Origin: Podarcis erhardii | Lineage: Eukaryota | DNA length: 64,000 nt | Direction: 5' to 3' (one strand) | Assembly: GCA_964252035.1 (NCBI GenBank) | Contig: OZ176203.1 | Shown here: positions 17,169 through 21,128 of the stretch, piece after piece | Numbering within the stretch: the stretch's first letter is position 1 | Layout of the letters: each line of letters opens with the position of its first letter | The notes under the pieces: generated by a model | Seen by the model: only the letters and a program-made list of their open reading frames with translations | What the model was told of the DNA's origin: nothing | Databases searched by the model: none | Program-made: the position numbers and the translations under genes

Positions 17169-18068
17169 CCTCAGGGTCTTACTGCCCACCCGCCTCTGTT
17201 TCCTTGCTGTGCTTGCTCAAACGGAACAAAGAGCAGGGAAAGCCCCTCCCCTCCAGGCAAGCAGGCAGGAGGGAGAGAGAGAGAGAGAGAGAGAGAGCGT
17301 GCGAGCTGGCTGGCTTGGGTGAGTAGGTGAGGGAAAACTTTTGCCTTCCTTTCCTCCCTCCCCGTTATACCCCTCTCCTGCATTCTTAGCCAGCTGCTTC
17401 TCTGCACACCCCTCTCGTGCTCCTTGTCCGTTCTGTGTTTTTCCTTCCCTCCCCACTTAAAATGTGGTTTAAAAGCATGGATCCACATGGATCCTCAGGA
17501 TCTTTGCATTGGGTCACCCCAAATTCACCATCAGATCACATAGCATGTCCATGGCTACAGCCTGCCCCCCCAAAATCACACACCCACTGTTGCCTGGGGC
17601 TGCAATGGTGCAAAAACGTGGTTACAAAACATGGATCCACAGGGATTCTCAGGATTTTTGCATTGGGTCACCCCAAATTCACCATCAGATCACATGTCTG
17701 TGGCCACAGCATGAAGCACAAAAATGATACATCATTAATATTCACTGCCCACGGCGGCAGCCAATCGGCTGCCGCAAAGGGCGGGCCCTCACAGGTTCAC
17801 TGAATAAAGTATTTTATAATTTTTCATATTTCTGTTTACTTACTATTTCATAATAAAGTAATTATAAAATACTTTATTTGTGTTTATTTGATTCCTATTA
17901 AAGAGAGTTACTTTATATATAGTCAATATAGGCACAGAGTTAATTTTTTAAACATTTTCTAATGGTGGTGTGCCTCGAGATTTTTTTCATGAAACAAGTG
18001 TGCCTTTGCCCAAAAAAGGTTGGGAAACACTGTGTTAGACGATGAGCAATTAAATAGTCCCGAGATGG

Positions 18069-19905
18069 ACTTCCGGGTTGACGCGATCGGATTAATGGCG
18101 GATTCCCTCCGAGCTCCGGGGGGAATCGGCTCCGCTGAGAACGGGTCTTGCCGCGCCGGCGACGCGGGGACCCTTAGAAACCACAGGTGCGGATACCTGT
18201 GGACCTGGTGACTCGGTGGGCACCTTAAGCGCCCTCCTCGACAGTCAAAGAGCCTTTTTAAAGGCTGCGGAGAAGGTACGAGGAGTGGCGTGGTGCTGAG
18301 AGTAGACCGCTACCTCAGTGGAGTGAAGCCGCAAGCCATTGCCGGAGAGCGTCAACTTTCTTCCCGAAATTTGGACCGAAAGTAAACACCCCGTGAGTAA
18401 AGGAAATTCGATCTTTAAAAGAAATTTTATCCCTAATCTGGCGACCGGGGGGGACGTGCTAAAGGGAAGTCCGCACCCCCCCTCATACAGACAATTTAAA
18501 GCAAGGAGCGAAAGCCTAAGATCAGAGAGGAATAATCTCGTGTCTTTCGGAGATTGACAGAGACTTTATCAATTTACGTGAACAAGTCGTTTTTTTTTTC
18601 TAAGCTGTGCTGGAGGAAAGAGGAGAGTTTCAGAAAATTTCTGTGTACCCCCCCCCCCGAACCCGGGAGTACCCTGTAACAGCCTAGCGCGAAAGAACAG
18701 AGTTTTGACAGCTGTCAAGTGAGCTGTCAAACGGCAGGACTAAGAGAACTGTATTACTTTATATCTTTTGGATTTACAAAGTGTTTTATTCAACTAGAAG
18801 TGGTTGGAAACAAAGTAAATAACGAGCTAAAAAGACTGTTGGTACAGAACTTTAACAATGGCAATCCCTCTAGAGGGGACTGGAGACATTACAATGGCTG
18901 CAGAAGGAAAACTACTAGCAGAAATAGAAAGAGCCTTCTTTCTCGTGGGAACTTTACAAGAGCAAGCTATGATTATGGATAAACAGTTGATGACCTTGAT
19001 CTCTAAGACAAGTAATCCTGCTGATGGAAGGAAGGAATTGACTCTGGAAGATTCTGCAGCTGAACCAGAAAAGATATCTTTGGAGTTGGAGGAAAAACAG
19101 GTCGAAGGGGAGAAAGTACAGTTGTTAAACTTCTTACAGGACTCTTTGCAGCCAAGGAACAGAGAAGCCCTTTGGACTACAAGTCATGGAGAGAGAGAAG
19201 CAAGGGAGGAAGCCGCTGGACACAATAAAAGATGGGAAATTAAAAAAACAAAGAAATACAACTGGGGCTTCCTCCTCTTTTCTGGAATTGATGACTTGGG
19301 ACTTTGGGGACCTTTGGCAGAACCTTGGCACCAAGTCCTTCTAATTAGGATTGATCTGAGAAAGGATGAAGAGACCTCCCGAGACTTGAAGACCAATAAA
19401 ATGGATTACCAACAGAACAGGCAGGGAGAGACTGAAATAGACTTAAAGGCCTCTGACGTGAGAAATCCGGGCTAGGGATTTTAGAAGAGGACAGTTATTT
19501 TGGAAGGGACAGATACCTGGGCAGGGAGGGAAGGGGAAAAAGTAGAATTTAAAATTTTAGGATTTTTGGGTCTTTTTTTTATAATGTTGACTCATATTTT
19601 AATAAAAAAAGGGTAATTTTTGGTATAAGAATTTTGATTGATCTTAGAATAAGGATCTAATGTATATAAGTAAAAGATTATTGAATTGGGCCTAACAAAA
19701 AGAATCAAATTTAAACATAATAAGAATAGGATTGGGGAAGGAAATAAGAACTTGCTGAATTTAATATGGAAATTGGGATGTATGGGGGGGGGCGGGGGAA
19801 GTCAGGGAAAGAGGGTTATGAAAGCAAAGATATGAAACCATTTATATGTTTGTGTGTGTGTTGTCATAAAATGTGAAAATCCAATAATTTAAAAAAAAAA
19901 AAAAA
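18069..19905 (+). mobile_element. 1837-bp L1-related non-autonomous element (half-L1-like)
   Basis: 18-bp TSD taaatagtcccgagatgg (18051-18068, 19906-19923); (gg)acttccgg CpG-rich 5' end as in squamate L1s; one ORF; polyA at 19891-19905; no RT/EN. Confidence 0.8.
18858..19475 (+). CDS. 205-codon open ORF of the half-L1-like element (second ATG at 18894); putative ORF1 derivative
   Basis: Uninterrupted ORF, Glu/Lys-rich and helical-looking N-terminal half; I recognise no domain. Confidence 0.5.
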   Translation: MAIPLEGTGDITMAAEGKLLAEIERAFFLVGTLQEQAMIMDKQLMTLISKTSNPADGRKELTLEDSAAEPEKISLELEEKQVEGEKVQLLNFLQDSLQPRNREALWTTSHGEREAREEAAGHNKRWEIKKTKKYNWGFLLFSGIDDLGLWGPLAEPWHQVLLIRIDLRKDEETSRDLKTNKMDYQQNRQGETEIDLKASDVRNPG

Positions 19906-20748
19906 TAAATAGTCCCGAGATGGTATGTGTGATGTTGTTGGGGCCAGTAATGGTGTTGTCCGGGTGTATGTGGCAGCAAAGTTGGCATCTGGGTTTATTG
20001 CAGGCTCTGGTGCCAGTGTCCGTGTTAAGTCTGGTAGTAGTATTATTGTGGGTTAGGAGTTGTTTAAGATTGGGTGGCTGTCTGTAGGCAATGAAAGGTC
20101 TTCCTCCCAGAGCTTGAGAAAGAGAACTGTCATTGTCCAGGAGAGGTTGTAGATCTCTGATGATGCGTTGTACTGTTTTAACTTGGGAGCTGTATGTGAT
20201 GACTAGAGGTGTTCTGTTATTTTCTTTTTTGGGTCTGTCTTGCAGCAAGTTCTCTCTGGGTATCAGTCTGGCTCTGTTGATCTGTTGTCTAACTTCATCT
20301 GCTGGGTATTTTAGTTCTAAAAAGGTTTGCTGTAGATCTCTTAGGTGAGAGTCTCTGTCTGTAGAATTGGAACAGATGCGGCTGTAACGTAGTGCCTGGC
20401 TATATACAATGGACTGTTTGGTATGTTTGGGATGGTAGCTAGAGGCATGTAGATATGTTTGTCGGTCAGTTGGTTTACAGTATAAGGTGGTGTCTATGCG
20501 CCTATCCTGTATTTTTATAGTAGTGTCCAAAAAATGTATTTCTTGCATAGATTGATTCATTGTTAGGTTGATTGTGGGGTGAAAATCATTGAATTTCTGG
20601 TGGAAGGTGTCCAGGGTCTGTTGACCATGTGTCCAGATGATAAAAATATCGTCAATGTATCGCAGGTACAAGAGAGGTTTGAGTGGGTAGGAGTTTAGGA
20701 AACGTTGTTCTAAATCTGCCATGAAGATGTTGGCATACTGTGGGGCCA
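19906..20748 (-). pseudogene. Penelope reverse transcriptase C-terminal portion and linker
   Basis: APQYANIFM...YLRYIDDIFIIW...FLD...LYCKPTD...SSYHP...RICS; no stops; joins in frame to the GIY-YIG part once inserts are removed. Confidence 0.93.
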
Positions 20749-21128
20749 ACAGGAATTTTTTTATTTTGTTTTGACTATGGCAGACCAACACGGCTACCTA
20801 TCTATAACTAGTCCATAGGTGGATTTCAACTTCCCCACTATTTAAAGAAATGGGTAAAGTACGGTATGTACAATGTGAAGTAGCCTTCAGGCCAATGACC
20901 TGCCATTTGTTAGTTCTTAGCTAGACATGGAAAAGCTTCACTGCTTGTCTTGGGGAGTTTTGTCTGCTATGGCAACATTTTGAAAATCCCCTGATATGGT
21001 TGCAGTGGAACAACAGCCTCTTTCTTCATTATGCACCTGGGCTATACCCAAAATCCAAATAGTAGAGCATTGCGGTGGCAAAAAAGGCTATTGTGTATCT
21101 GTAACACATCTCTTTTTTCTATTCCTAG

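Follow-up and report, generated by a model that had tools for sequence, protein, structure and literature searches.

A 64-kb stretch of the Podarcis erhardii genome (64,000 nucleotides of contig OZ176203.1, assembly GCA_964252035.1; hereafter the window, with position 1 its first letter) carries at 18069-19905, on the plus strand, a retroposed unit of 1,837 bp with a single open reading frame (ORF) of 205 codons. The best explanation, and one that we consider probable, is that this unit belongs, as a young and complete copy, to a lacertid family of non-autonomous elements of about 1.8 kb. The family would descend from L1, keeping the L1 5′ untranslated region (5′UTR) and the last ~250 nucleotides (nt) of the L1 3′UTR. 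It would lack endonuclease and reverse transcriptase, depend on L1 for mobility in the manner of the mammalian HAL1 elements, and encode a protein that is not recognisably the L1 protein ORF1p.

Structure of the element

The limits of the unit can be read directly from the sequence. A previous sequence-only reading of this DNA had described an 18-bp target-site duplication (TSD), a CpG-rich L1-type 5′ end and a poly(A) tail, a leader of about 790 nt with a CCC/GTGAGT donor motif at 18393, an open frame of 205 codons and a 3′UTR of about 430 nt, and all of these were recovered. The two copies of the duplication agree at 18 of 18 positions. Because the repeat is perfect and is placed exactly at the end of the poly(A) tail and at the 5′ end that the family shares, it is not a chance match. 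On the top strand the target context reads ...CAAT/TAAATAG, or TT/AAAT if the duplication is taken as 17 bp, and is AT-rich like the sites of the L1 endonuclease. The first 100 nt of the element have a G+C content of 69% and 16 CpG, whereas the ORF and 3′UTR have only 0-1 CpG for every 100 nt; beyond its 5′ end the element is A/T-rich and nearly free of CpG. The leader measures 788 nt up to the first ATG and 824 nt up to the ATG that is conserved in relatives (18894), its donor motif at 18390-18399 being donor-like by sequence, and the 3′UTR comprises 415 nt followed by a tail of 15 A (A15).

Only two ORFs of at least 200 amino acids occur in the window, and the 205-codon frame, one of the two, is the largest in the 1,837 bp. 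Pfam finds nothing in it, and no reverse transcriptase or endonuclease was found in the unit, in agreement with the earlier description of the element as lacking reverse transcriptase. In relatives, the AATAAT of the window element's 3′UTR is represented by AATAAA or ATTAAA, and its (TG)n run by a pyrimidine microsatellite. A scan of 17900-20100 against Rfam gave no match at E-values up to 1.

A family with common ends

Relatives of the element were all retrieved through protein database searches and consist of Logan contigs from other samples together with a locus of Podarcis lilfordi (L008). A word-indexed protein search returned six proteins of 188-214 amino acids with 43-68% identity to the ORF. 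An exhaustive profile search of 1.84 billion representatives brought the total to ten proteins, all of 129-215 amino acids and all matched end to end. Leader, ORF and 3′UTR of the window element align in the same order with the contigs behind them (L001-L007 and L010-L012), at 65-80% nucleotide identity. Identical leader-ORF-3′UTR junctions are found, at 65-87% identity, in eleven contigs and in a full-length copy from P. lilfordi; these twelve colinear sequences come from ten or more samples or genomes. The 3′UTR follows directly on the stop codon in every contig that extends past it, and relatives down to 24% protein identity keep the same layout.

A second complete copy lies in P. lilfordi (OX395132.1; L008 8930-10720). 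It is 70% identical to the window element and aligns with it from the element's base 1 to the tail. Its 5′ start, ACTTCCGGGTTG, falls at the same nucleotide, its tail is A11, and it is flanked by its own duplication of 14 bp, TAACT[G/A]TTTCTATC, with one mismatch. The ORF of this copy is frameshifted. CAI5779343.1, a 'hypothetical predicted protein' of 129 amino acids (L008 10001-10390), corresponds to the C-terminal half of the family ORF, frameshifted in this decayed retroposed copy, and is an annotation artefact. Two insertions in two species have common termini yet differ by 30%, and relatives reach down to 24% protein identity; the family is therefore old and consists of several subfamilies. 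The colinear contigs and the second TSD-flanked, full-length copy with the same junctions bear out the earlier suggestion of a family as opposed to a one-off deletion.

Selection on the coding frame

In 10 of the 10 relatives compared, all of them retrieved through intact ORFs, the ORF is open, with a length of 188-215 amino acids, or 171 in the most distant. A comparison of nonsynonymous and synonymous substitution rates (dN/dS) among copies, as the sequence-only reading had suggested, gave pairwise values of 0.33-0.63 with all bootstrap 95% intervals below 1, at synonymous divergences (dS) of 0.4 to more than 1, and indicates that the ORF is under purifying selection. The ~50 residues that follow the conserved Met and the final ~35 are the most constrained (dN/dS 0.09-0.36), the middle only weakly so, and the nucleotide conservation profile agrees. 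The last nine sense codons have 3, 2 and 7 variable sites at codon positions 1, 2 and 3, respectively, so that change near the stop is mostly synonymous, and the ending A-S-D-[VL]-R-x-P-G-stop is retained even at 24-28% overall identity. The upstream ATG at 18858 is missing in L006, L007, L010, L011 and the P. lilfordi copy; the conserved start is the one at 18894. Because the constraint is seen between subfamilies, and selection in retroposons acts on copies that make copies, we infer that the protein aids the element's own propagation.

L1 ancestry of the ends

Both ends of the element have counterparts in Podarcis L1s. A deleted L1 in P. lilfordi (L008, from 5349) has a 5′ end with 66% identity to positions 18070-18399 (E = 1e-29), and 18070-18508 (439 nt) match the 5′ end of an L1 in P. 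raffonei (L009) at 69% identity (E = 3e-59). The 3′ ~250 nt (19649-19905) have homology to the 3′ end of this L008 element (E = 6e-10 and 6e-4) and to that of L009 (E = 2e-6). The L1 derivation put forward earlier thus stands on 330-440 nt at the 5′ end and ~250 nt at the 3′ end, homologous to elements with remnants of L1 ORF1 and ORF2, and on a 5′ terminus that fits the clade-1 consensus. In Anolis the conserved 5′ extremity of clade-1 L1s is GACTTCCGGTGN8ATGGCG (Boissinot and Sookdeo, PMC5381506). The same L1s have long, conserved, CpG-rich 5′UTRs of 792-1,465 nt and 3′UTRs that contain repeat tracts and end in a polyadenylation signal and poly(A) (PMC5381506). The 5′ terminus and the 3′UTR layout of the window element fit this description, and the length of its leader is in or near that range. 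Sequence comparison supports a descent of the element, at both ends, from an L1 of the lizard clade-1 type.

In an alignment of family leaders with L1 5′UTRs (A4), conserved blocks follow one another in identical order: ACTTCCGG...ATGGCG, CCCGTGAGTA, GGAAGTCCGC, TGACAGCTGTCA, and a C-run/CTAG/G-run before the coding region. We take the terminal motif to combine an ETS-like core at +1 with a YY1-like ATGGCG. An upstream ORF of 38 codons (18095-18211) opens at this ATGGCG; the same ATG in the L1 5′UTRs opens a few codons only, and the 38-codon peptide is therefore not conserved. The TGACAGCTGTCA block occurs also in L001-L011 and in the L1 5′UTRs of L008 and L009, and pairing prediction allows it a stem of 10 bp. 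It may be a palindromic site of TALE homeodomain factors (MEIS, TGIF or PKNOX), an RNA stem being equally possible.

Because all copies retain the sequence downstream of the GTGAGT motif, it is the unspliced RNA that gets copied. About 200 nt 3′ of CCCGTGAGTA, at ~18576-18596, lies a polypyrimidine tract with an AG, in which a T-run is followed by AAG (CAG in some relatives). Judged by their motifs, CCCGTGAGTA and the tract downstream may represent a leader intron or a U1-binding site, the interval being retained in all genomic copies.

The P. lilfordi locus also contains, 1.4 kb from the family copy, a poly(A)-tailed L1 of 2.1 kb with the same 5′ start (L008 5349-7487). Through an internal deletion, the N-terminal part of its ORF1 (...NLRIR) reads on into the ORF2 zinc knuckle, at H-x4-C, as one frame of 268 amino acids, and the element is a second, different type of short L1 derivative without reverse transcriptase. 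Its ORF2 tail was placed among 'reverse transcriptase zinc-binding' (zf-RVT) clusters in the Atlas and had no match in the PDB by phmmer. Its ORF1 part is 62% identical to P0023 (P. raffonei LOC128406054), residues 188-319 of which match residues 752-882 of human L1 ORF2p (E = 4e-15). LOC128406054 (L009 10001-11693; CM049768.1), carries the annotation 'uncharacterized protein'; its gene model was pieced together from a deleted L1, with an ORF1 N-terminal part and an ORF2 piece.

The encoded protein

The ORF had been described as lacking a recognisable RNA-recognition motif (RRM) or C-terminal domain (CTD) of ORF1, and the searches and models agree with this. Pfam gave no match for the ORF or for seven family members at E-values up to 10, and the exhaustive profile search retrieved no L1 ORF1p and no longer relative. 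Among PDB chains the family profile found no L1 ORF1p even at E = 10, and only a non-significant match to a helix of neuroguidin (E = 0.35). When it was compared by hhalign with the N-terminal and coiled-coil part of ORF1 from one Podarcis L1 lineage, the probability was 0.2%; the sole alignment, between the C-terminal tail of the family and residues 22-38 of P0023 (E = 0.26), was taken as chance. A feature search of the ESM Atlas gave no usable neighbour. The middle 1.25 kb of the element (18400-19650) showed no nucleotide or translated similarity, by sensitive blastn and tblastx, to ~104 kb of other Podarcis DNA that includes L1 pieces (the rest of the window, L008 and L009). A scan of the examined Podarcis DNA for the motif that starts the ORF1 RRM found only the truncated instance in L009.

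Two AlphaFold2 runs, on 7 and 15 sequences, agree on one helix at codons 9-52, with the rest below 50 in predicted local distance difference test (pLDDT) and no folded domain after the helix. According to these models and the conservation along the chain, the protein begins with a predicted long helix, continues through a middle that is acidic, poorly conserved and probably disordered, and ends in a conserved tail; its isoelectric point (pI) is 5.0. Taken together, the searches support the view that the protein sits in the position of ORF1 but is not recognisably ORF1p, neither the RRM nor the CTD having been found. The ORF may stem from an ORF1 coiled coil diverged beyond recognition or from unrelated sequence.

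A 2A (StopGo) peptide was considered for the tail and rejected. The tail reads D-V-R-N-P-G and then stop, which falls short of the motif by one residue and lacks a Pro codon, and distant members end in S-P-G or D-P-G. The 2A motif, as generally understood and as given in PMC3708506, is D-[VI]-E-x-N-P-G and then P, the N, P, G and P being essentially invariant.

Alternative explanations

The element might be a true half-L1 that works like mammalian HAL1, its 205-amino-acid ORF being a shrunken, fast-diverged L1 ORF1 reduced to the coiled coil. The ORF does occupy the ORF1 position, directly after a 5′UTR that matches L1 5′UTRs block by block, and the sole structure modelled with confidence is a long N-terminal helix, which may be likened to the coiled-coil domain of ORF1p. 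ORF1 coiled-coil regions also diverge quickly in most vertebrates; in lizard clade-1 L1s, however, the coiled coil is unusually well conserved, so that a relative should have shown (PMC5381506). None did: similarity to ORF1p was absent from the exhaustive profile search, from Pfam, from the PDB comparison (E up to 10) and from hhalign, and 18400-19650 resembled nothing in the ~104 kb of Podarcis DNA with its L1 pieces. ORF1p is, moreover, a basic protein, in contrast to the pI of 5.0 found here. We consider this explanation unlikely, though one that deserves weight.

A processed retrocopy of the mRNA of a fast-evolving host gene, with the Logan relatives as orthologues or paralogues of that gene, is very improbable. 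Such an origin would also be compatible with a TSD, a poly(A) tail, an mRNA-like layout (CpG-rich 5′ end, one ORF, 3′UTR) and purifying selection on the ORF. However, both ends are homologous to L1s, whose 5′ consensus also fits the first bases, and the 70%-identical P. lilfordi copy is itself TSD-flanked and poly(A)-tailed with the same start base. No annotated host gene turned up among 5.8 and 1.84 billion proteins, the sole named match being a frameshifted retroposed copy, and the leader with its GTGAGT is unspliced in all copies. Hardly any credence can be given to a one-off internal deletion of a full-length L1, or to a chance open frame without function: the window does hold a single copy and short deleted L1s do occur in related genomes, such as L008 5349-7487, but 12 independent sequences, with protein identities as low as 24%, share the junctions, and the frame has stayed open at dS values from 0.4 up to more than 1, dN/dS being well below 1.

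Several points count against an L1-dependent, HAL1-like family, the explanation that we favour. A search of the 64-kb window found no second copy of the element, so that it is represented here by a single one. The comparisons of the ends were confined to deleted Podarcis L1s that carry ORF1 and ORF2 remnants. Retrieval through protein databases favours open frames, yet on its own it cannot push dN/dS to less than 1. For a substitute of the RNA-binding ORF1p, an acidic protein is unexpected, and the ORF may derive from L1 sequence in another frame.

Features of the element and its insertion site

The features of the element are collected in Table 1.

Table 1. Features of the retroposed unit and its flanks, in window coordinates.
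Feature	Position	Strand	Remarks
Left target-site duplication, TAAATAGTCCCGAGATGG	18051-18068		Exact 18/18 match to 19906-19923
L1-type 5′UTR (leader), CpG-rich at its start	18069-18857	+	Homology to Podarcis L1 5′ ends
5′ terminal motif, ACTTCCGG...ATGGCG	18069-18100 (ATGGCG 18095-18100)	+	Shared start of the P. lilfordi copy (L008 8930) and of two L1 5′ ends
Splice-donor-like motif, CCCGTGAGTA (CCC/GTGAGTA, G of GT at 18393)	18390-18399	+	In every family member covering the site and in both L1 5′UTRs (A4; L010, L011)
Conserved block GGAAGTCCGCAC, then C-run	18465-18476	+	Invariant core in A4, in family and L1 5′UTRs
Palindrome TGACAGCTGTCA (18706-18717) and second GCTGTCA (18722-18728)	18703-18732	+	Longest invariant leader stretch in A2 and A4
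ORF, 205 codons and stop	18858-19475	+	Conserved start at 18894 (193 codons)
C-run/CTAG/G-run palindrome closely preceding the conserved start	18866-18877	+	In all family members and both L1 5′UTRs
Predicted long N-terminal helix, codons 9-52	18882-19013	+	AlphaFold2 pLDDT 80-87; among the two best-conserved parts of the protein
Conserved C-terminal tail, R-D-L-K-x-N-x-K-D-Y-Q-Q-N-R ... A-S-D-V-R-N-P-G-stop	19371-19475	+	dN/dS 0.09-0.36
3′UTR, 415 nt	19476-19890	+	G-rich tract 19784-19798, (TG)n run, AATAAT 19883-19888
Poly(A) tail, A15	19891-19905	+	Direct reading; L002 and the P. lilfordi copy also have poly(A) at the homologous point
Right target-site duplication, TAAATAGTCCCGAGATGG	19906-19923		Exact copy of 18051-18068

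The element was inserted into an older repeat. On the minus strand an ORF of 300 amino acids with likeness to reverse transcriptase (19889-20791) resumes across the empty site at 18051-18068. Its match to RVT_1 (E = 1e-4) is below Pfam's cut-off, and its C-terminal part is rich in Cys and His. The repeat is presumably a Penelope-type element.

A possible route of mobilisation

As an L1-dependent element, the unit would be transcribed from the L1 internal promoter retained in its 5′UTR, at the ACTTCCGG...ATGGCG start. The RNA would be polyadenylated at a site of the L1 type, to which the tail testifies. The ORF would be translated, and purifying selection between subfamilies suggests that the element requires the protein product to propagate itself. 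ORF2p from an autonomous L1 would then be captured and mobilise the RNA in trans, as the tail, the length of the TSDs and the AT-rich target are consistent with. Target-primed reverse transcription at an AT-rich site, presumably by that enzyme, would account for the A-tail and the duplications of 14-18 bp, the outcome that the copies display. As for the protein, our best guess, made with low confidence, is that it may act as an oligomerising ribonucleoprotein (RNP) component or adaptor through its helix and C-terminal tail.

It is also conceivable, but quite doubtful, that a protein not derived from ORF1p lets an RNA without reverse transcriptase compete for the L1 ORF2p by a new route, for example as a helix-oligomerised adaptor whose C-terminal 35 residues form a docking motif or a peptide that makes the ribosome pause at termination. 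Those 35 residues have about the length of the ribosomal exit tunnel and end in R-x-P-G-stop, and a pausing peptide may hold the ribosome at the junction of ORF and 3′UTR, near the poly(A).

Relation to known retroposons

HAL1 is a mammalian L1 derivative that encodes only ORF1p, according to PMC5753468, which summarises Smit 1999 and Bao and Jurka 2010. On that account, the lizard family resembles HAL1 as a non-autonomous L1 derivative with L1 ends, a single ORF in the ORF1 position, no ORF2, spread as a family and a selected coding region. It differs in that the HAL1 ORF is a recognisable ORF1p, with coiled coil, RRM and CTD (Pfam Transposase_22), whereas the lizard ORF has no detectable similarity to ORF1p; the host is a squamate and the ends are of the lizard clade-1 type. 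An origin separate from that of mammalian HAL1, as the sequence-only reading had proposed, would follow from the host lineage. To our knowledge, half-L1 elements have been described only from mammals, and with a normal ORF1p. A literature search of a limited collection found no paper on a half-L1 from lizards or other squamates.

With lizard clade-1 L1s (L1_AC of Anolis; PMC5381506) the element shares the ACTTCCGG...ATGGCG terminus, a CpG-rich 5′UTR of ~0.8-1.4 kb with conserved motifs, an A-rich body, and a 3′UTR with repeat tract, polyadenylation signal and poly(A). Unlike them it has neither ORF2 nor the ORF1 RRM and CTD, and it measures 1.8 kb instead of ~6.4 kb. The deleted L1s of L008 5349-7487 and LOC128406054 have the same type of 5′UTR and 3′ end, and are likewise short, without reverse transcriptase and retroposed with poly(A). 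However, in them the N-terminal sequence of ORF1 and the C-terminal sequence of ORF2 are still clear, brought together by a deletion; the ORF of the window family is unrelated, and its subfamilies have a long history of their own. Alu and SVA have poly(A) and L1-type TSDs too, and the lizard family would share their dependence on ORF2p in trans; both are non-coding, whereas the lizard family has a selected protein and an L1-derived promoter.

Our results have a consequence for annotation, as copies of the family and deleted L1s are labelled as 'hypothetical' or 'uncharacterized' genes in P. lilfordi and P. raffonei. A squamate L1 lineage has, on the probable explanation given here, yielded a long-lived family without reverse transcriptase, the selected protein of which shows none of the RNA-binding domains of ORF1p. 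If the new route to ORF2p were true, the family would parasitise L1 as a coding element with a factor of its own making, and would not be a cut-down L1. If the protein is required for mobilisation, L1 ORF2p could be recruited by RNPs built on a factor other than ORF1p, and the family would offer a small natural system, of 1.8 kb and one protein of 200 amino acids, for the minimal cis and trans needs of L1-type retrotransposition.

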